Source: Mytilus californianus
Taxonomy: Eukaryota
Assembly (NCBI RefSeq): GCF_021869535.1
Contig: NW_026262712.1
Location: forward strand, 78,988,001 to 79,052,000
Direction of reading: 5' to 3'
Length of the DNA stretch: 64,000 nt
Numbering within the stretch: the first letter of the stretch is position 1; each line of letters begins with the position of its first letter. The notes under the pieces were generated by a model, which ran no database searches, was not told the DNA's origin, and saw nothing but the letters and a program-made list of their open reading frames with translations. The translations under genes were made by a program, and so were the position numbers. Below, one piece after another: positions 3,892-53,040 of this stretch.

Positions 3892-4864
3892 TTTTTGTCT
3901 CGCCTTGACGGAGTCAAAAAGCGAGACATAGGTATGCTGTTTCCGGCGTCGCCGTCAACAATGTATTAGTTTGTGATTATGTCTAGTTCATAGTGAACCA
4001 CTAGTGGTAGGTCAATGATATTTAGTATGCAGTTGTATTAGCATTGGCACATCTCATTACCATGGAGATTATTTGGCCTTGCCCCCTCAGTCAAGGTCTA
4101 CTGACTTTGAAAATTTTCATAGTTTACATGTATTAGTTTGTGATTAGGTCAATTTATGGGGAACCACTAGTGGTAGGTCAATGATATTTGGTATGCAGTT
4201 GTATAAGCATTGGCATATCTCATTTCCATGGAGATTATTTTGCTCCGTCCCCTTAGTCATGGTCAAAATGTTGCTAAGTTAACATGTATTAGTTTGTGAT
4301 TAGGTCAGTTCAAGGGGAACCATAAGTGGTAGGCCAATGCTAATTGGTGTTCAGTTGTATAAGCATTAGCACATCTCATTTCCATGTAGAATATTTGGCC
4401 CCGGCCCCTCAGTCATGGTCTTTTTTATTTGAAACTTTTGCTTAGTTTACATGTATTAGTTTGTGATTAGATCAGTTTAAGATGAACTGCTAATGTTATG
4501 TCAATGATATTTGGTATGCAAATTTATTGGCATTTGCAAGTATCGTTTCCATGGAGATTATATAGCCCCACCCTTGATCATGGTTCATTGACTTTGAAAA
4601 TTTTTACATAGTTTACAAGTTAAGGTTTGTGTTTAGGTTTGTTTAAAGGGAACGACTTATAATAAGTCAATGGTGTTTGGTATGCAGTTGTATTAGCATT
4701 GGCACATCTCATTCCATGAAGATTGTTCAGCCATGTACCTTCAGTCATGGTTCATCGACTTTGAATATTTGCATAACTTACATGTTAAAGTATTGCTATT
4801 TTAATTTCAACATTTGCATTATCAAAATAACAAAAAGGCGAGACATATCTCTGTGATAACAGTT
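3892..4864 (+). mobile_element. Helentron-type non-autonomous element (HINE/DINE-1/pearl-like) with internal tandem array
   Basis: 5' subTIR tttttgtctcgcc plus nearby inverted copy gcgagaca (3921-3928); 3' subTIR aaaaaggcgagaca (4832-4845) followed by hairpin ctgt-gata-acag; five units of about 156-167 bp starting at 3961, 4128, 4284, 4451 and about 4617. Confidence 0.8.
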
Positions 4865-5539
4865 TATTACATTTGTAAGAGACAACGGACACATAGTGTT
4901 GACAATTATCCGATTGCAAATGTTTTTAGATCGCCGTCTTTTTCTTTAAGGTAGTCGGAAATAATCTTTTCAGCAGTTCGGACGACTGTTTTTTGTGTTT
5001 TTGGCATTCTTGTCCTTAAATAATCTTTCTAGATCTCCATCGGAAAGCGACGCAAATAGCCCTAAATGAGCCATGATCATGTCGTCTGATGCGACTTGGT
5101 GTGTGTTCGAACGACTCGGGAATCGACGTTAATAATTGAGATGAATTCCCATAGTCCCGAATGAATGGTTAAAATCCCGTTAGCCAATCCCGTAGCTGCA
5201 GTTGAAATTCCGCGAATTATAAAGACGCTTGCGGTCAAATAATTTCATCGAGGGCAAATAGTTGGAAACTATTGACCGGTCAAATAGTTCAACGCTTGCA
5301 ATTTGAAAAATAGTGAAAACATTATGTACTTATTCAATATAGAAAATGATAACTGAGGTATAATAATGGCAATTGGCATACGATTGGCAATCATACCACA
5401 TCTTCTTTTTTATATGTAGTCATCAGCATGTATTTATAGTTTGGTCTGTTTATTTTTTTATTTAGGGAAAGGTTTTTATATAAGAGCACTGCTGTTCTTT
5501 CCTAATACAATTTGCTTAATTACTTTAAGAATAAGAAAA

Positions 5540-5813
5540 TGTGTTTTTGATTGACAATGAGACAATTCTCCACCAGAGACCAAATGACGTTGAAGGTTAA
5601 CAATTATAGGTTACCGTACGGCCTTCAACAATGAGCAAAACCCATACCGCATAGTAATCTATTAAAGACCCCGAAATTGCAAGTGTAAAACAATTTAAAT
5701 GAGAATACTGATTATAACTGCTTGATTTATGTACAAAACAATAAAAACAAAAAAAAAGTACAGAAACAAAGGACAATCACTGAATTACAGGCTCCTGACA
5801 TGGGACAGGCATA
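5540..5813 (-). mobile_element. Family 4 element truncated inside the twister module
   Basis: Terminus motif plus P4/L4 cctgacatgggacagg (5794-5809), after which homology ends. Confidence 0.7.
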
Positions 5814-8369: not shown

Positions 8370-8680
8370 CAAAAAGGAGATGTGGTATGATTACCAATGA
8401 CAAAACTATCCTCAAAAGACCAAAGGAAATGGATGTAAACAACTACAGGTAACCGTACAGCCTTCAGCAATGAACAAAACCATTACCATAAAAACCCCTG
8501 TCATAACCAAATGAGAAACAATCATTGGAGAAAACCAACGACCTGCTTTATGATCAAAACATTTAATGATGAACAAAACCAGCACCCCTCAACCACCGAC
8601 AACCACTGAAAGGTTCATTAAGAATGCAGCGAGGTGAAACATGTTTGTGAGCGCTCAATTCTCCCCTAAACTTGAACATG
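8370..8680 (-). mobile_element. Family 4 element with P4/L4 of the twister deleted
   Basis: Terminus motif; retains aaacatgttt (8637-8646) and tgagcgctca (8648-8657) palindromes and ctcccct. Confidence 0.65.
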
Positions 8681-26295: not shown

Positions 26296-27310
26296 AATAA
26301 AATTGAGTATGGAAATGGGGAATGTGTCAAAGAGACAACAACCCGACCATAGAGCAGACAACAGCCGAAGGCCACCAATGGGTCTTCAATGCAGCTAGAA
26401 ACTCCCGCACCCGGAGGCGTCCTTTAGCTGGCCCCTAAACAAATATGTATACTAGTTGAGTGATAATGGACGTCATACTAAACTCCAAATTATACACAGG
26501 AAACTAAAATTAAAAATGAAACAAGACTAACAAAGGCCAGAGGCTACTGACCTGGGACTGGCGCAAAAATGCGGCGGGGTTAAACATGTTTTTTGAGATC
26601 TCAACCCTCCCCCTATACCTCTAGCCAAAAAATGTAGAAAAAAAAACCGCACAACAGTACGCACAGTAAAACTCAGTATAAGAGAAGTCCAAGTCCGATG
26701 TCAGAATGGGAAACAAAAGAAAATAAACAAAATGACAATAATACATAAATAACAACAGACTACTAGCAGTTACTGACATGCCAGCTCCAGACCTCAATTA
26801 AACTGTTTGAAAGATTATGTCTTCATCATATGAATATCAGGCATAATCCCTCCTGTTAGGGGTTTAGTATTATACCGTCATAAAATATATGAGAAGAACA
26901 TAACCCGTGTCATGCTAACAACTAGTTTTAAAATAAATGTGTTTAGTTCAGATGCAAAGACCCTATAAGTGAATCAATATTAAAGCCAAAATATGCAATC
27001 TTTAATGACCTGACAACAATATCCCTTCTTAATAAGTCTGTTTAAAGGTTTATTAGCTTTTGAGGTGAATACTGACATTTTTGTGCTTTGTAAAGTATAT
27101 TACCATAAAAGATTGGATGTGAAATACCCGAACGTATAAGATGTCTGCATGTTGAGTTATATTTACGAATGATGTCCTTATACCGATGATAAAATTTAGT
27201 AAATGTTTTGACTAGTTTATGGTATTGAAAATTCTGGTGTAATAATTTTTCAGTAATACATAAATTTCTCTTGCTGAAATTCAATACGTTGTTACATACA
27301 CGAGCGAATA
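26296..27310 (-). mobile_element. Second, shorter 5'-truncated copy of PLE family 1
   Basis: Closely similar to 48837-49860: RT C-terminus (NLCITEKLLHQNFQYHKLVKTFTKFYHRYK) plus the full 3' UTR, same 3' end (aataaaattgag on +). Confidence 0.9.
26535..26626 (-). ncRNA. Type P5 twister-like ribozyme in the second family 1 copy (P4/L4 mutated)
   Basis: Same fold as 49071-49162; T1 CCC/GGG intact, L4 UCCCAGGU, P4 CCAG/CAGU weakened. Confidence 0.7.
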
Positions 27311-29674: not shown

Positions 29675-29852
29675 GTTATCAACGGTACCAGGATTATAAT
29701 TTATTACGCCAGACGCGCGTTTCGTCTTCACAAGACTCATCAGTGACGCTCAGATCTAAATAGTTATAAAGCCAAACAAATACAAAGTTGAAAAGCATTG
29801 AAGACCCAAAATTCTAAAAAGTTGTGCCAAATACGACTAAGGTAATCTATAT
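29675..29852 (-). mobile_element. Hammerhead-bearing retrozyme-like repeat
   Basis: Shared flanks gttatcaa.ggtaccagg and gcattga.gacccaaaatt with copies at 14.4, 35.6 and 52.9 kb. Confidence 0.7.
29707..29748 (-). ncRNA. Minimal type I hammerhead ribozyme, intact
   Basis: CGUCA-CUGAUGA-GUCUU(GUG)AAGAC-GAAA-CGCGCG-UC^-UGGCG; stem II differs from the 52965 copy but still pairs. Confidence 0.9.
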
Positions 29853-35158: not shown

Positions 35159-35550
35159 TTAAATAAAGACAACAGTAGTATACCGCTGTTAAAAATTCAT
35201 AAATCGATTGAGAAAAAAACAAATCCGGGCTACAAACTAAAACTGAGGGAAACACAAAAAATATAAGAGGAGAACACAGACACAACAGACACACTAAAAT
35301 GCAACACACACAGAAACGAACTATAAGATAACGATAGCAATTTTCCTGACTTGGTACAGGACATTTAAGAAAAAATGGTGGGTTGAACCTGGTTTTGTGG
35401 CTAGCCAAACCTCCCGCTTTAATGGCAATGTTAAATATAACACTAAAATGACAACATCACATGACAGGACTACAATACAAATATATAGAAGAACATACAG
35501 GACAGAGAAACTCACAAATAAACAATACAATAGAACATTACGACAAGCTA
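35159..35550 (-). mobile_element. Twister-bearing non-autonomous element (aaataaagacaacagtagtata terminus)
   Basis: Homologous to 43473-44030. Confidence 0.75.
35335..35430 (-). ncRNA. Type P5 twister-like ribozyme (ACC/GGU subfamily), core intact, P5 decayed
   Basis: GCGG-GA-GGU-UUGGCUAGCCACAAAACCAGGUU-CAA-CCC-ACC-P3-G-UCCUG-UACCAAGU-CAGGA. Confidence 0.7.
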
Positions 35551-36937: not shown

Positions 36938-37232
36938 TATGTACCCCTATTTGTGACATTTTTACCTATTATGTCTGTTTGTTTTGTTCACACAATGTTG
37001 CCAATATAAGGGAGTTTTATGCGACTGTCATACAAGTGAGAGGTTTAGCTAGCTATAAAACAAGGTTTAATCCACCATTTTCTACATAAAGAAATGCCTG
37101 TACCAAGCCAGGAATGTGACAGTTGTTTTCCATTCGTGTGATGTGTTTAAGTTTTTGATTTTGCAATTTGATAAGGGACTTTCCGATTTGAATTTTCCTT
37201 GGAGTTTGGTATTTTTGTTATTTTACTTTTAA
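36938..37232 (+). mobile_element. PLE family 2 3'-UTR fragment with twister
   Basis: Reverse complement of 23771-24060; related fragments at about 17330-17570, 31415-31555, 48160-48240 and 51505-51641. Confidence 0.8.
37024..37123 (+). ncRNA. Type P5 twister-like ribozyme (ACC/GGU subfamily), near intact
   Basis: P5 ACUGUCAUA/UGUGACAGU, GUGA-GA-GGU, U^AA (37068/37069), UCC-ACC, P3 AUUU..AAAU, G, P4 CCUG/CAGG, L4 UACCAAGC. T1 is ACC/GGU; one T2 pair is A.C. Confidence 0.75.
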
Positions 37233-41325: not shown

Positions 41326-42120
41326 ATGGTGTCAAATGTACAATTGCGTTATGTTGCTTCAGCAGTAATATACTTAATACTTTTATGCAACGAACTTGTT
41401 TGTCAAGAAAGCACTGAACTGTCAAAAGATGATGAATTATTACAATACAAAAGAAAAATGGATATGTATCGATTCCATGGAGCATTAGGTAAACGACAGA
41501 ATGAACAACCGATTCCTGAAGATCAGTTTGAAAAAAGAAAAATAGACTACGCCAGGTTTTTAGGTTCTCTAGGAAAGCGCGCAACTTTTGACGATAGCTA
41601 TCCAGAAGTAGAACGAAGATCTAAATATGATAGATTTATGTTCTCACCAAGCTTAGGTAAACGATATGTAGATCCACAAGAATCCATTGAAGCAGATAAA
41701 CGACGTCTTGACCGCTTCTCGTACTTTGGCAATCTTGGGAAAAGAGGAATGGATAAGCTGTCATATTTTGGAAGTCTAGGGAAACGTGGCCTTGACAGAC
41801 TATCTTTCTTTGGAGGGCTTGGGAAAAGAAGGCTTGATAGACTGTCATACTTTGGAGGGCTTGGTAAAAGAAGTGGAGATACGGATGAAAGGTATAATAA
41901 TATTGACAGTGCTGACAATTACAATTTGTATGATGTAAATGATATTTTGCCTGCGCGCGAAACTAGATCATGGTACTGGACAAATAGAGGTACAAAGCGG
42001 TTACCAGTTTCAATCAGGGGCATTGATAAATATTCACTGTTCGGTTCACTTGGTAAAAGAAGCATAGATCAAGAACGACTTCAAGAAATTTTAGGAAAAA
42101 GATTATTATCTAGTGTGTAA
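41326..42120 (+). CDS. buccalin: Buccalin / allatostatin-A type neuropeptide precursor (264 aa)
   Basis: Hydrophobic N-terminal signal peptide (about aa 1-26), then nine L-G-KR amidation/cleavage sites releasing KMDMYRFHGALa, KIDYARFLGSLa, SKYDRFMFSPSLa, RLDRFSYFGNLa, GMDKLSYFGSLa, GLDRLSFFGGLa, RLDRLSYFGGLa, (LPVSIR)GIDKYSLFGSLa and SIDQERLQEILa. The pattern matches Aplysia buccalin A (GMDSLAFSGGLa). Four peptides lie in 42-bp tandem units at 41704-41871. Confidence 0.95.
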   Translation: MVSNVQLRYVASAVIYLILLCNELVCQESTELSKDDELLQYKRKMDMYRFHGALGKRQNEQPIPEDQFEKRKIDYARFLGSLGKRATFDDSYPEVERRSKYDRFMFSPSLGKRYVDPQESIEADKRRLDRFSYFGNLGKRGMDKLSYFGSLGKRGLDRLSFFGGLGKRRLDRLSYFGGLGKRSGDTDERYNNIDSADNYNLYDVNDILPARETRSWYWTNRGTKRLPVSIRGIDKYSLFGSLGKRSIDQERLQEILGKRLLSSV

Positions 42121-43472: not shown

Positions 43473-44030
43473 AATAAAGGCAACAGTAGTATATCGGTGT
43501 TCAAAAGACATAAATCGATTGAGAGAAAACAACTGCTATATTCCTGACTTGGTACAGGACATGTTAAGAAAAAATGGTGGGTTGAACCTTGTTTTATGGC
43601 TAGCAAAACCTCCCGCTCACATGGCAATGTTTAAAAATATATCGCTAAAATGACAACACTACGTGGACAGAAATACAGCACAAACACTCATCACAGAGAA
43701 ACGCACAAACAAATAATATAGTCGACATACCATGCAAACCGCAGAACAACAGCGAACATCTTCTATCAACGACAGACACTACAGGACATCACAAACAGTG
43801 ACGCACTTACGTACAAACATGCAATCTCGAACATTATACAATTATTTTCGCAAAACCAGTTCAAACAATTTTCATGACAATGATGGAATTGAAAGGCTAT
43901 TTTATAATCATTTGGACTACAAACGATAAGACATAACACATTATCTAACCGAAACCATAACAGAAACATAAAAAATAAATACATGAATGTTGGATGTACA
44001 AAATACCGAGACACGTCGAATAGCAATGCA
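43473..44030 (-). mobile_element. Twister-bearing non-autonomous element, same family as 35159-35550
   Basis: Shared terminus, twister module and upstream segment. Confidence 0.75.
43532..43628 (-). ncRNA. Type P5 twister-like ribozyme (ACC/GGU subfamily), near intact, C^A site
   Basis: P5 AUUGCCAUG/UAUAGCAGU, GCGG-GA-GGU, CAA-CCC-ACC, P4 UCCUG/CAGGA, L4 UACCAAGU (T2 A-U, C-G). Confidence 0.75.
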
Positions 44031-45340: not shown

Positions 45341-45560
45341 AATAAAATTGAGAATGGAAATGGGAAATGTGTCAAAGAGACAACAACCCGACCAAAGAGC
45401 AAAAACATCCCAAGGCCATCACTGGGTTTTCAATGCAGAGAGACAATCCCGCACTTAACTCCGAAACATAAAAATGAGCAAAAATTAAAAAAAAAAAAAA
45501 CAACATACAAGACTAACAAAGGCTAGAGGTTCCTGACTTTGGACAGGCGCAAAAATGCGG
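45341..45560 (-). mobile_element. Internally deleted 3'-end fragment of PLE family 1
   Basis: Same 3' terminus and 3' UTR; homology stops at 45560, inside the twister module. Confidence 0.8.
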
Positions 45561-45624: not shown

Positions 45625-46045
45625 ATAGATATAAGAAGATGTGGTATGAGTGCCAATGAGACAACTCTCCATCCAAGTCAAAATTAAACCATTATAGGTC
45701 ACAGTACGGTCTTCAACACGGAGCTTTGTCTCACACCGAACAGTAAGCTATAAAGGGCCCCAAAAAAATACTAGTGTAAAACCAATCAAACGGGAAAACC
45801 AACGGTCTAATCTATATAAAAAACGAGAAACGAGAAACGAGAAACACTTATGAACCACATCAACAAACGACAACTACTGAACATCAGATTCCTGACTTAG
45901 GACAGGTGCAAACAAATGCAGCGGGTTTAAACGTTTTAATGGTACCAAACCTTCACCCTTTTTCTGAAACAATAGTGTAACATCACAACATAGAAAGACA
46001 CACTATAAAATATCAACTGAAATAGCTTAACTCAATCAAAAGACA
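45625..46045 (-). mobile_element. Non-autonomous PLE-like element, family 4 (aagatgtggtatga terminus), carrying the intact twister
   Basis: Terminus aagaagatgtggtatgagtgccaatgagacaact is shared with copies near 5380, 5540, 6975, 8375, 33410, 41025, 43130, 46440 and 52530. Confidence 0.75.
45884..45967 (-). ncRNA. Type P5 twister-like self-cleaving ribozyme, apparently intact (best copy)
   Basis: UCAGA-AAAA-GGGU-GA-AGG-[UUUGGUACCAUUAAAACGUU]-U^AA-ACCC-GCU-GCA(UUUGUU)UGC-A-CCUG-UCCUAAGU-CAGG-AA-UCUGA. P5 UCAGA/UCUGA, P2 ACCC/GGGU, P3, P4 CCUG/CAGG, T1 CCU/AGG, T2 GC/GU. Predicted cut between 45929 and 45928. Confidence 0.85.
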
Positions 46046-47271: not shown

Positions 47272-48130
47272 GATTAACGCCCACAAGGTTAGTTCGAGAC
47301 CTTTCTAGATTGAGGTCCACAAGGTGTGCTCGAGACTTTTCTAGATTAACATCCATGACCTTTCTAGATTAACGTCCACAAGGTATGCTCGAGACCTTTC
47401 TAGATAAACGTCCACAAGGTATGCTCAAGACCTTTCTAGATTAACGCCCAAAAAAGTATGCTCGAGACCTTCCTAGATTAATGTCCACAAAGTATGTTCG
47501 AGATCTTTCTAGCACAAGGTATGCTTGAGACATTGCTAGATTAACCTTCACAAGCTTAATGTATAATCGAGACCTTTCTAAATTAACGCCCACAAGGTAT
47601 GCCCGAGACCTTTCTAGATTAACGTCCACAAGGTATGCTCGAGACCTTGCTAGATTAACTTTCACAAGCTTGATGTATGATCGAGACTTTCTAGATTAAA
47701 ACCCACATAATATGCTTTAGACCTTTCTCGATAAACGCCCACAAGGTATGCTCGAGTCCTTTCTAGAATAACGTCCACAAGGTATGCTCGAGACCTTAAT
47801 AGATAAACGTTCAAAATGTATGCTCGAGATCTTTCTAGATAAACGTACACAAAGTATGCTCAAGACCTTTCTAGATTAACATCCACAAGGTATGCTTGAG
47901 ACCTTGCTAGATTAACTTTCACAAGCTTAATGTATGATGGAGACCTTTCTAGATTAACGCCCACAAGGTATGCTCGAGACCTTTCTATATTAACGTCCAC
48001 CAGGTATGCTCGAGACCTTTCTAGACTAACTTCCACTAGCTTAAGGTATGCTCGATACTTTTCTAGATTAACGTCCACAGGGTATTCTCGAGACTTTTCT
48101 AGATAAGTGCCATTAGGTATGCCCGGGACC
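47272..48130. repeat. 36-bp minisatellite, about 23 units
   Basis: Consensus acaaggtatgctcgagacctttctagattaacgtcc with recurrent 42-bp variant units. Confidence 0.95.
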
Positions 48131-48836: not shown

Positions 48837-50465
48837 ATAAAATTGAGAATGGAAATGGGGAATATGTCAAAGAGACAACAACCCGACCAAAGAGCAGACA
48901 ACAGCCGAAGGCCATCAATGGGTCTTCAACGCAGCGAGAAAATCCCGCACCCGGAGGTGGTCCTCAGCTGGCCCCTAAATTAAATTGTGTACTAGTTCAG
49001 TGAAAATGGACGTCACACTAAACTCCAAAATATATATAACTAAAATTAAAAGACATACAAGACTAACAAAGGCCAGAGGCTACTGACTTAAGACAGGCGC
49101 AAAAATGCGGCGGGGTTAAACATGTTTTATGAGATCTCAACCCTCCCCCTATACCTCTAGCCAATGTAGAATAAAGAAACACATAGCAATACGCACAGTA
49201 AAACTCAGTTCAAAAGAAGTCCGAGTCCGATGTCAGAATAGGTAACAAAAGAAACTAAGCAAAATGAAAATGATACATAAATGAACAAAGGACTACTAGC
49301 AGTTACTGACATGCCAGCTCCAGACCTCAATTAAACTGATTGAAAGATTATGTCTTCATCATATGAAAATCAAGTACAATCCCTCCCGTTAGGGGTTTAG
49401 TATCATACCATCATAAAATATATGAGAAGAACATAACCCGTATCATGCCAACAACTGGTTTTAGAATAAATGTGTTTATTTCCGATGCAAAGACCCTATG
49501 AGTGAATCAATATTAATACCAAAATATTCAATCCTTAATGTCTTGACAACAGTATCGTAACTATATCCTTTCCGAATAAGTCTGTTTAAAGGTTTGGTTA
49601 GCTTTTGAAGTGAATGCCGACATTTTTTTGCTTTGTAAAGAATATTACCATAAAATATTGGATGTAAAATACCTGAACGCATAAGATGTTTGCATGTTGA
49701 TTTATATTTACGAATGATGTCATTGTACCGATGATAAAATTTAGTAAATGTTTTGACTAGTTTGTGATATCGAAAACCCTGGTGTAATAGTTTTTCAGTA
49801 ATACAGAGATTTATTTCGTTGAAATCAAATACGCTGTTACATACACGTGCTAATCGAACGAGTTGAGATATATAAACACCCTAAGATGGCGACAAGGGAA
49901 CGTCACCATCTAAAAATGGATAATTAAAAATAGGAAATGAACAATCATCTCTTTTATCATAAATTTTGGTATTAAGCTTCCCGTTAAAGATAAAGATATC
50001 AAGATCCAGGAAAGGGCAGTGTTCATTGTTAGTATTAGCTTTATTTAAAGTCAGTTCGGCAGGATAAATCTCTTTAGTGTACATACTGAAGTCGTCATTA
50101 TTGAGAGCCAATATATCATCTAAATATCTAAAAGTGTTATTAAATTATTGATTCAAATGTTGTTTCGATGGGTCTTTGCTGATTTTAGTCATAAATTGTA
50201 ACTCATAACAATACAGAAACAGGTCCGCAATCAGTGGTGCACAATTATTCCCCATGGGAATTCCGATAACCTGACGATATACGGAATCTCCATTGCGAAC
50301 AAAAATGTTATCTAGTAAAAATTCAAGGGCAGTTATAGTATCAAAGCAGGTCCAATTGGCATAGTTCTTTTGTTTGTTGTTACTAAAAAATGACCTAAAA
50401 GAGTTTGAACATATATATTTGCATTCCGACTTTTTAAATGCCCATTTAATCAAATGTGTACAGGA
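48837..50465 (-). mobile_element. 5'-truncated Penelope-like retroelement, family 1 (C-terminal RT, Naiad-like), with twister module in the 3' UTR
   Basis: One frame reads ...YRQVIGIPMGNNCAPLIADLFLYCYE...FRYLDDILALN...CPFLDLDI...KIYDKRDD...GVYISQL...KLLHQGFRYHKLVKTFTKFYHRY...SLHRK* (ends 49476), with in-frame TAA (50145) and TAG (49881). No GIY-YIG follows the RT. The 3' UTR is about 640 nt. Confidence 0.9.
49071..49162 (-). ncRNA. Type P5 twister-like ribozyme in the PLE family 1 3' UTR (slightly decayed)
   Basis: P5 GGCUAGAGGU/GCCUCUGGCC (10 bp), P2 CCCC/GGGG, GA-GGG, UAA, GCC-GCAUUUUUGC-G, P4 CCUG/CAGU, L4 UCUUAAGU. Predicted cut 49118/49117. Confidence 0.75.
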
Positions 50466-52892: not shown

Positions 52893-53040
52893 TTTTTGGA
52901 ATTTTGGGTCCTCAATGCTCTTCATCTTTGTACTTTTTTGGCTTTATTACTATTTTGATCTGAGCGTCACTGATGAGTCTTATGTAGACGAAACGCGCGT
53001 CTGGCGTAATAAATTATAAGGCTGGTACCTTTGATAACTA
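52893..53040 (+). mobile_element. Hammerhead-bearing retrozyme-like repeat
   Basis: Reverse complement of the 29.7 kb element; contains the intact HHR. Confidence 0.75.
52965..53006 (+). ncRNA. Minimal type I hammerhead ribozyme, intact
   Basis: CGUCA-CUGAUGA-GUCU(UAUGU)AGAC-GAAA-CGCGCG-UC^-UGGCG. Stem I CGUCA/UGGCG, palindromic stem III ACGCGCGU, GUC cleavage after 53001. Confidence 0.9.

Follow-up and report, generated by a model that had tools for sequence, protein, structure and literature searches.

Two loop-free palindromes occupy the P1 slot of a predicted twister-fold RNA in putative Naiad-type Penelope-like elements and may support its cleavage as a dimer

How might a twister ribozyme cleave itself if the strands that should close its P1 helix cannot pair with one another? 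The question is raised by a 64,000-nucleotide stretch of the Mytilus californianus genome (RefSeq assembly GCF_021869535.1, contig NW_026262712.1, positions 78,988,001 to 79,052,000), hereafter the window, in which an earlier note made from the sequence alone drew attention to positions 49116-49141. On the minus strand, this is the segment between the T1 strand of the second pseudoknot (PK2) and the predicted cleavage site of a twister-fold RNA of type P5, here called copy A. It takes in the nucleotides A2 and A1, a palindrome (pal2), a spacer, a second palindrome (pal1) and the first nucleotides 3' of T1. As far as sequence comparison can tell, what is new here is a twister fold with two loop-free palindromes in place of P1, found in what appear to be Naiad-type Penelope-like elements (PLEs). 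To our knowledge, all twisters described to date have a P1 helix and none has been reported as a dimer; in the literature searched there was no paper joining twister and Naiad, and none on a palindromic or dimeric natural twister. The palindromes are probably kept for pairing between copies. That the RNA undergoes dimer-supported cleavage, as a fixed part of the 3' tail or pseudo-long terminal repeat (pLTR) of its host, is a reading that we hold with about even confidence.

Copies of the domain were collected with a DNA pattern that spans P4/L4 and A1A2/P2a and is blind to pal1. It gave four matches in the window and none in shuffled sequence, and 120 matching metagenome contigs, about 45 of which carry the element. 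With the element protein as query, we obtained 3229 unnamed homologues, and eleven further loci from six assemblies at about 48-62% protein identity. An exhaustive parser resolved 36 copies with a near-perfect core, comprising 20 distinct core haplotypes and 24 distinct linkers, the linker being the segment in the P1 slot. Pairs were counted on parsed segments of fixed length; a MAFFT alignment of 30 copies was left out because the GA dinucleotide was offset by one column between families. The parser favours paired solutions, so that the pairing percentages given below are biased upwards; the compensatory pair types found across families are direct sequence readings.

The element order of the copy A domain (Table 1) is that of a twister opened in P5, i.e., circularly permuted, with the predicted scissile bond between positions 49118 and 49117 of the minus strand. 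P2, the helix that in a twister closes internal loop L1 with its cleavage site, has a standard pair at each of its four positions in 18-20 of the 20 haplotypes, and P2.1 occurs as five pair types (CG, UA, AU, GU, and GC). L4 conforms to U-NNN-AAG-N in 19/20 haplotypes, and its majority form, UCCCAAGU, is identical at 7/8 positions to the rice L4 UCCCAAGC given in the methods of PMC11662667. P4 is found as CCUG:CAGG, AUCG:CGAU, and ACCG:CGGU, with two pair types at P4.3. In the first pseudoknot (PK1; T2), where the nucleotides past P2a form two pairs with the end of L4, standard pairs are present in 19-20 of the 20 haplotypes and PK1.1 is GU, AU, CG, or UG. In PK2, L4 positions 2-4 face the three nucleotides past the GA as CCC:GGG, CCU:AGG, ACC:GGU, CCA:UGG, or UCU:AGA, with four types at PK2.3; one large family has PK2 at 2/3 pairs (UCC:GGU). 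For P2.1, PK2.3, PK1.1, and P4.3, none or almost none of 2000 partner shuffles equalled the observed pairing. Within the window, the copy at 45.9 kb differs from copy A by a compensated P2 (GGGU:ACCC) and a compensated PK2 (AGG:CCU). The GA, whose G would be the conserved general base 3' of P2b, was found in 18/20 haplotypes, and the nucleotide before the predicted cleavage site (N-1) is U, or C in some copies. GA, A1A2, and the L4 pattern are nearly invariant among copies, the AA of A1A2 having been demanded by the parser and therefore not being independent evidence. P1, phylogenetically conserved among twisters, is the exception: the linker ends are not complementary, and the linker alone is predicted to fold at 0.0 to −1.5 kcal/mol. 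Judged by the covariation of both pseudoknots, P2, and P4, this is a twister fold lacking only P1.

The linker has the same layout in every family: 1-2 nt (U or UU), pal1 of 8-12 nt, 1-4 nt, and pal2 of 8-10 nt. The pal1 palindromes are strong and G+C-rich; the pal2 palindromes are weak, of the AAA..UUU type, and end at N-1 or 1 nt earlier. Under a strict criterion, which accepted non-overlapping, loop-free Watson-Crick palindromes of at least 8 nt, two palindromes are present in 13/24 distinct linkers, compared with 0/109 members of a null set (chance matches of the scan pattern in unrelated genome and viral contigs) and 0.135% of shuffled linkers. At least one palindrome is present in 22/24 distinct linkers, compared with 7/109 chance matches. 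A looser statistic, with 3-bp arms and G.U pairs allowed, was set aside, 11.6% of the chance set reaching at least 16 paired nt by that measure. The 24-linker set contains 13 distinct pal1 and 6 distinct pal2 of at least 8 nt, all of them perfect Watson-Crick palindromes (listed in Table 1), and copies with a decayed core have decayed palindromes too. The earlier note had proposed a twister core, no ordinary P1, and palindromes whose sequence varies while self-complementarity is kept. The core is borne out by P2, P4, both pseudoknots, GA, A1A2, and L4 over the 20 haplotypes, the missing P1 by the predicted lack of fold in the linker, and the variation by the pal1 and pal2 variants, central pairs included. 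Every one of the six palindrome pairs quoted in that note was located in the window sequence, the pal2 at 37.05 kb being imperfect.

Could each palindrome fold back on itself, or does it call for a partner? The central dinucleotide of pal1 switches among AU, UA, GC, and CG with the flanks unchanged. Four states are found in the ERZ25069870 family (AGGUACCU, AUGGCCAU, AGGCGCCU, AGGAUCCU), three in the subfamily of the 45.9-kb copy (UGGUACCA, UGGAUCCA, UGGGCCCA), and two in the L194 family (GGGAUCCC, GGGUACCC). This amounts to at least eight switches, each self-complementary, where about one fifth of unconstrained altered centres would be expected to be self-complementary by chance. Since a loop-free palindrome cannot pair its four central nucleotides in cis, a centre that stays self-complementary points to pairing between two copies. 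The predicted monomer energy of each palindrome is 0 to −0.8 kcal/mol, compared with −11 to −18 kcal/mol for the pal1 self-duplex and −2 to −12 kcal/mol for that of pal2, and homodimers of the whole domain are predicted to lie 8-15 kcal/mol below two monomers. An inhibitory helix, GGGUU:AACCC, in the minimum free energy folds of the monomer was dropped as a candidate, as the L191 family does not conserve it. No second intramolecular partner for pal1 that would allow cyclisation was found in near full-length elements, where pal1 occurs once; its partner would therefore be another twister copy. An alternative with no dimer is that each palindrome forms a mini-hairpin in cis, leaving a monomer with two small stem-loops for P1. 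Such a structure would be the topologically monomeric equivalent of the dimer, and unusual pal2 forms (AACC-A-GGUU) could make 3-bp stems with 3-nt loops. However, the predicted hairpin energies are close to zero, and the four central nucleotides of pal1 would be a free loop, the very positions that keep their self-complementarity through all the switches; we find this alternative scarcely credible.

Some variants are palindromic only when G.U pairs in the sense RNA are counted (UGGGAUCCCG, AACUGGUU, and U..G flanks in five families), and these are common to several copies. Their numbers are small, but such multi-copy wobble variants suggest pairing at the RNA level rather than a DNA site. Palindromes that act or arise in DNA would be either sites for a dimeric protein, for example the element endonuclease, or the outcome of mutation, for instance by quasi-palindrome correction or snap-back synthesis. 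Perfect palindromes of 8-12 bp do look like dimeric-protein sites, and PLEs are known to insert as complex tandem and inverted arrangements (PMC8557442). Nevertheless, pal1 is free to change across 13 variants, unlike a sequence-specific site; the wobble variants, palindromic only as sense RNA, recur in several copies or families; the sole inverted junction seen (locus L082) lies away from the palindromes; and the palindromes decay along with the ribozyme core. We therefore regard an origin or role in DNA as very improbable.

For RNA pairing between copies, the geometry can be proposed as follows. The pal1 of one copy would pair with the pal1 of a second copy, and pal2 with pal2, the second copy being either a separate RNA molecule or another twister in the same tandem or pLTR transcript. 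By strand polarity, the 5' end of pal1, at T1, and the 3' end of pal2, at N-1, would meet at one corner of a side-by-side two-helix bundle, and the short spacer of the partner would bridge that corner. Each core would gain a helical platform in the usual place of P1, with one active site at each end of the dimer. On this model, the RNA would fold and cut as a dimer, with monomers remaining largely uncut. Cofold predictions return the pal1 duplex only, because two duplexes between the same strands are non-nested. We infer from the sequences that RNA-RNA dimers of this kind may form in vivo.

Whether two twisters would come together depends on the host element. In Naiads, a single open reading frame (ORF) encodes a GIY-YIG endonuclease at the N terminus and a reverse transcriptase (RT) at the C terminus; pLTRs arise through partial tandems, copies are often truncated at the 5' end, and some lineages have an in-frame UGA with a selenocysteine insertion sequence (SECIS). 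Naiads are stated to lack canonical hammerheads (PMC8557442). In loci L073, L010, and L114 we found a 424-aa frame with a GIY-YIG-like start (GIQYVGETGR in L073), an in-frame TGA, a 480-aa frame, a SECIS-like element, and the twister, in this order; neither L073 ORF piece (424 aa, 480 aa) had a match in Pfam. SECIS-like elements lie at 49360-49424 (minus strand; SECIS_1, 32.2 bits) and 26827-26891 (minus strand), about 200 nt upstream of the window twisters. SECIS_1 also matches L073:469-533 (−), L194:5512-5574 (+), and L197:6367-6429 (+), the scores being 26.5-34.6 bits, just below the gathering score of 35, and the distance to the twister is about 200-300 nt in several families. The frame order with TGA and SECIS-like element would fit the selenoprotein-coding Naiads of PMC8557442. 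Of the features tied to tandem structure and truncation, we observed pLTRs in L193, 5'-truncated tails in the window, the TGA in L073, and SECIS_1 scores near threshold. We therefore assign the host provisionally to Naiad-type PLEs, with a clade membership that is partly verified and a putative RT. The window itself contains no full-length element: the copies at 49.1 and 26.6 kb each consist of some 1 kb of tail, truncated at the 5' end, and at 48838, the element 3' end, RNA reads diverge into many different flanks (loose ends at 48837/48838).

Tandem copies are found at other loci. In L193, positions 147-1061 and 4721-5635 are direct repeats of 915 bp that are 100% identical and flank ORFs, as the pLTRs of a young full-length element would. 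Two twister copies, different from each other and separated by 343 nt, lie in each repeat; they have pal1 (AUGGCCAU) and pal2 in common. In L191, tandem tails lie 845 bp apart. From such tandem and pLTR copies, transcripts with at least two twisters are expected, as for hammerhead-bearing PLEs (PMC6765202). The window also contains two type-I hammerhead matches, at 52964-53007 (plus strand) and 29706-29749 (minus strand), with scores of 33.0 and 32.6 bits, just below the gathering score (34); both are within a 155-bp repeat, and their stem III is the loop-free palindrome ACGCGCGU, as in the dimer-type hammerhead of canonical PLEs. By these matches, canonical PLEs in this genome are built on the same principle.

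Is the predicted site cleaved? Raw reads of four RNA-seq runs, which carry two species labels, were placed at 90% likeness, with an end-peak threshold of one fifth of depth. Per orientation class, runs X22-X24 covered the twister at a depth of about 350-740 and run X21 at about 105-390; the majority of reads have L4 CCC, P4b CAGG, and a spacer 1 nt shorter, as in the family consensus. No molecule-end peak was found at 49118/49117 or elsewhere in the twister, and no dip in depth, in these four runs, whose libraries do not enrich cleavage ends and whose reads mix thousands of dispersed copies on both strands. Genome copies retain an intact site together with about 280 nt downstream, which indicates that their templates were uncut at the site. 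The motif is thus not a constitutive self-cleaver in bulk transcripts, a result that fits dimer gating and inactivity equally well.

Inactivity would mean that the twister fold has been kept in an RNA that is no active ribozyme, as a structural element or relic whose palindromes have another RNA function. The silence of the RNA-seq data is in keeping with this, as are the lack of a twister match in Rfam (see below), the 2/3 PK2 pairs of one large family, and the fact that Naiads proliferate without hammerheads (PMC8557442). Yet A1, A2, the G of GA, and the AAG of L4 are near invariant, and covariation extends to both pseudoknots across families with only about 48-62% protein identity to the query, which would be hard to explain without selection on the active-site architecture as a whole; we judge this explanation quite unlikely. 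A second possibility is that the palindromes are a dimerisation signal of the retroelement RNA, comparable to a retroviral dimer-initiation palindrome, set in a dispensable P1 slot, and that any cleavage by the twister is monomeric, as in a mini-twister. Such a signal could act in ribonucleoprotein co-packaging, template switching, or tandem formation. It would account for a pal1 that is strong and subfamily-specific beside a weak pal2; partial tandems of PLEs require template jumps (PMC8557442); and P1 of the twister is dispensable in vitro, imperfections in it being tolerated without loss of cleavage (PMC5408937, PMC11662667). An active monomer should, however, leave ends or a dip at 49118/49117, and neither is present in the RNA-seq data; genome copies derive from templates uncut there; and in every family examined the palindromes lie exactly between T1 and N-1, with N-1 included in pal2. 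We consider this possibility unlikely.

Returning to dimer-supported cleavage, several points weigh against it. The twister models of Rfam matched neither the window, nor the 161-nt segment 49040-49200, nor loci L073, L194, L197, and L092, whether the cut-off was the gathering score or an E of 10, so that membership in the twister class rests on our own parse and on literature features (PMC5408937, PMC11662667). The sample is modest (36 intact-core copies, 24 distinct linkers), and it was parsed by a program that favours pairing. The RNA-seq runs lack a cleavage signature, and with P1 dispensable in vitro, catalysis need not depend on the palindromes (PMC5408937, PMC11662667). The pal2 palindromes are weak, and those of some families leave a central A unpaired (AACC-A-GGUU, AAAC-A-GUUU). 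If both duplexes form between one pair of strands, the topology is non-nested and the spacers measure no more than 1-4 nt, an arrangement whose steric feasibility rests on argument. Among single decayed copies, G.U and A.C mismatches number about six each, which makes that comparison uninformative. Lastly, the L191 tandem tails at 5479 and 6324, which are 96.7% identical, carry the mutually unpairable pal1 AGGUACCU and AUGGCCAU, and contradict a strict rule that neighbours pair in cis. The dimer or tandem-copy activation inferred in the earlier note, by analogy with PLE hammerheads, accordingly stands in part: the core, the palindromes, and the tandem context (L193 pLTRs and L191 tandem tails) agree with it, and hammerheads with a palindromic stem III turned up in the same window, but ends did not pile up at the predicted site in the four runs. 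Its strongest form, a natural obligate-dimer twister in which the Naiad ribozyme would be switched on only by the pairing of family-specific palindromes in place of P1, between two RNAs or between the two pLTR copies of one tandem transcript, is possible, though we think it doubtful.

The coordinates of copy A and of other copies are given in Table 1; nhmmer with a profile of clean copies detected 11 copies within the window, among them several decayed ones. Positions 49040-49175 were covered 10-20 times deeper than the flanking element sequence in three RNA-seq runs that bear the same species label, with consistent loose ends at 49038 and 49171, indicating a twister module that is common (at least 90%) to subfamilies with differing flanks. 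Some truncated copies start a few nt 3' of the predicted cleavage site (window 45503-45560, minus strand; L026:403) and others exactly past pal1 (L093:1557, L026:767, L107:336). These clusters are few, with a scan pattern biased against the cleavage-site class, and could reflect an RT roadblock at a stable pal1 duplex or cleavage in vivo. Just past the element 3' end, at 47285-48130, short units are repeated in tandem and give many staggered self-matches (about 100 nt, 79-86% identity), and the sole ORF longer than 150 aa in the window encodes 264 aa at 41326-42120 (plus strand).

Table 1. Features of the predicted twister-fold domain of copy A, other copies in the window, and the palindromes found in the P1 slot
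Feature	Window position	Strand	Sequence	Basis or remark
Whole type-P5 twister-fold domain, copy A	49071-49162	−		sequence, parse and pair counts, nhmmer E = 8.7e-22
P5b	49154-49162	−	GGCUAGAGG	sequence and parse
Spacer	49150-49153	−	UAUA	sequence and parse
P2b	49146-49149	−	GGGG	sequence and parse
GA	49144-49145	−	GA	sequence and parse
T1/PK2 strand	49141-49143	−	GGG	sequence and parse
Linker (P1 slot)	49118-49140	−		U, pal1, UA, pal2 in this order
pal1, loop-free	49130-49139	−	UGAGAUCUCA	1 nt (U) past PK2 strand; predicted self-duplex −14.0 kcal/mol, hairpin 0.0
Spacer between pal1 and pal2		−	UA	sequence
pal2, loop-free	49118-49127	−	AAACAUGUUU	final U (49118) is N-1; predicted self-duplex −8.2 kcal/mol, hairpin 0.0
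A1A2, directly 3' of predicted scissile bond	49116-49117	−	AA	parse; A1 is the predicted general acid (role from PMC11662667)
P2a	49112-49115	−	CCCC	sequence and parse
T2/PK1 strand, then spacer C	49110-49111	−	GC	sequence and parse
P3 hairpin, then spacer G	49099-49108	−	GCAUUUUUGC	sequence and parse
P4a	49094-49097	−	CCUG	sequence and parse
L4	49086-49093	−	UCUUAAGU	sequence and parse
P4b, then spacer AG	49082-49085	−	CAGU	sequence and parse
P5a	49071-49079	−	CCUCUGGCC	sequence and parse
5'-truncated tail of host retroelement	48838-49854	−		about 88% identical to 26296-27309 (self-BLAST)
Copy B, same family as copy A	26538-26623	−		P4 and L4 mutated
Copy B, pal1	26593-26604	−	UUGAGAUCUCAA	12 nt
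Copy B, pal2	26582-26591	−		
Second-subfamily copy	45883-45969	−		
Second-subfamily copy, pal1	45940-45947	−	UGGUACCA	
Second-subfamily copy, pal2	45929-45936	−	AAACGUUU	
Third-subfamily copy	35339-35428	−		PK2 GGU:ACC
Third-subfamily copy, pal1	35398-35407	−	UGGCUAGCCA	
Third-subfamily copy, pal2	35386-35394	−	AACC-A-GGUU	
Third-subfamily copy	37026-37120	+		pal2 imperfect
Third-subfamily copy, pal1	37046-37055	+	UAGCUAGCUA	
Third-subfamily copy	43537-43624	−	UUGCUAGCCA (pal1)	one mismatch each in pal1 and pal2
Decayed copy	8611-8668	−		still with pal1 and pal2
Decayed copy, pal1	8648-8657	−	UGAGCGCUCA	
Decayed copy, pal2	8637-8646	−	AAACAUGUUU	
Thirteen pal1			UGAGAUCUCA, UGGGAUCCCA, UGGAUCCA, UGGUACCA, UGGGCCCA, UAGCGCUA, AGGUACCU, AUGGCCAU, AGGCGCCU, AGGAUCCU, GGGAUCCC, GGGUACCC, CGGGCCCG	24-linker set
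Three more pal1			UGGCUAGCCA, UAGCUAGCUA, UGAGCGCUCA	window copies outside the 24-linker set
Six pal2			AAACAUGUUU, AAACUAGUUU, AAACCGGUUU, AAAUGCAUUU, AAACGUUU, AACUAGUU	24-linker set

Many invertebrates have Naiads among their most abundant retroelements. If dimer-supported cleavage proves correct, Naiads, which were published as being without the ribozyme that marks other PLEs (PMC8557442), would carry a ribozyme of another class. These elements would then have arrived twice at the exchange of a closing helix for a palindrome combined with a tandem arrangement, which would point to a real role for dimer-gated cleavage in their unexplained replication cycle. An obligate dimer would make self-cleavage a sensor of tandem or multi-copy transcripts, and the twister would be the second ribozyme class, following the hammerhead, to have become dimer-dependent independently in PLEs. 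The twister fold could then depend on RNA-RNA association, a property useful for engineered RNA switches, and the subfamily-specific pal1 would represent a simple self-recognition code between element RNAs.

The closest known relative in structure is the type P5 permutation of the twister ribozyme (Roth et al. 2014; Rfam Twister-P5). The order of elements is the same (P5b, P2b, GA, T1, P1 slot, N^AA, P2a, T2, optional P3, P4/L4, P5a), and so are the UCCCAAG-N type of L4, the two pseudoknots of 2 and 3(+1) pairs, and the conserved A1, A2, and G. The copies described here differ in that a 20-25 nt linker of two loop-free palindromes replaces P1, and the Rfam models miss them; their host is Penelope-like, and their self-cleavage is predicted from sequence. 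The P5 permutation is reviewed in PMC5408937, and large-scale tests are reported in PMC11662667. A mini-twister without P1 was catalytically competent (Kosutic et al. 2015, in the description given by PMC5408937), but it was engineered from two strands and removes one nucleotide by cleavage, whereas here the strands of P1 are replaced rather than deleted and the replacement appears to be under selection. The T-variants of the Perere-3 twister (PMC8501958) are also twister-class, retrotransposon-borne, and unusual in P1. In them, however, P1 exists and is partly derived from the target-site duplication, the retroelement is of another class, and the ribozyme is at the 5' end, not in a tail or pLTR; for these variants, cleavage has been demonstrated both in vitro and with reporter constructs (PMC8501958).

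The closest parallel in design is the minimal hammerhead of PLEs and retrozymes, which, in the account given in PMC6765202, cleaves as a dimer (Cervera & de la Pena 2014; Lunse, Weinberg & Breaker 2017). Both have the same pLTR location, a core-adjoining helix reduced to a loop-free palindrome, and the same tandem arrangement with two ribozymes per transcript, and two such hammerheads are present in this window. The ribozyme class differs, and so does the topology: the hammerhead has one palindrome (stem III plus loop), giving one shared helix, whereas the two palindromes of the twister flank the positions of the two P1 strands and would give a non-nested two-helix dimer. Dimer-dependent cleavage has been demonstrated for the hammerheads; the twister is known from sequence comparison. 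Retroviral dimer-initiation palindromes, such as the dimer initiation site (DIS) of HIV-1, are short self-complementary stretches of retroelement RNA whose letters are lineage-specific while self-complementarity is kept, as with pal1. The HIV-1 DIS acts from a hairpin loop, through a kissing complex, and forms no part of a ribozyme.

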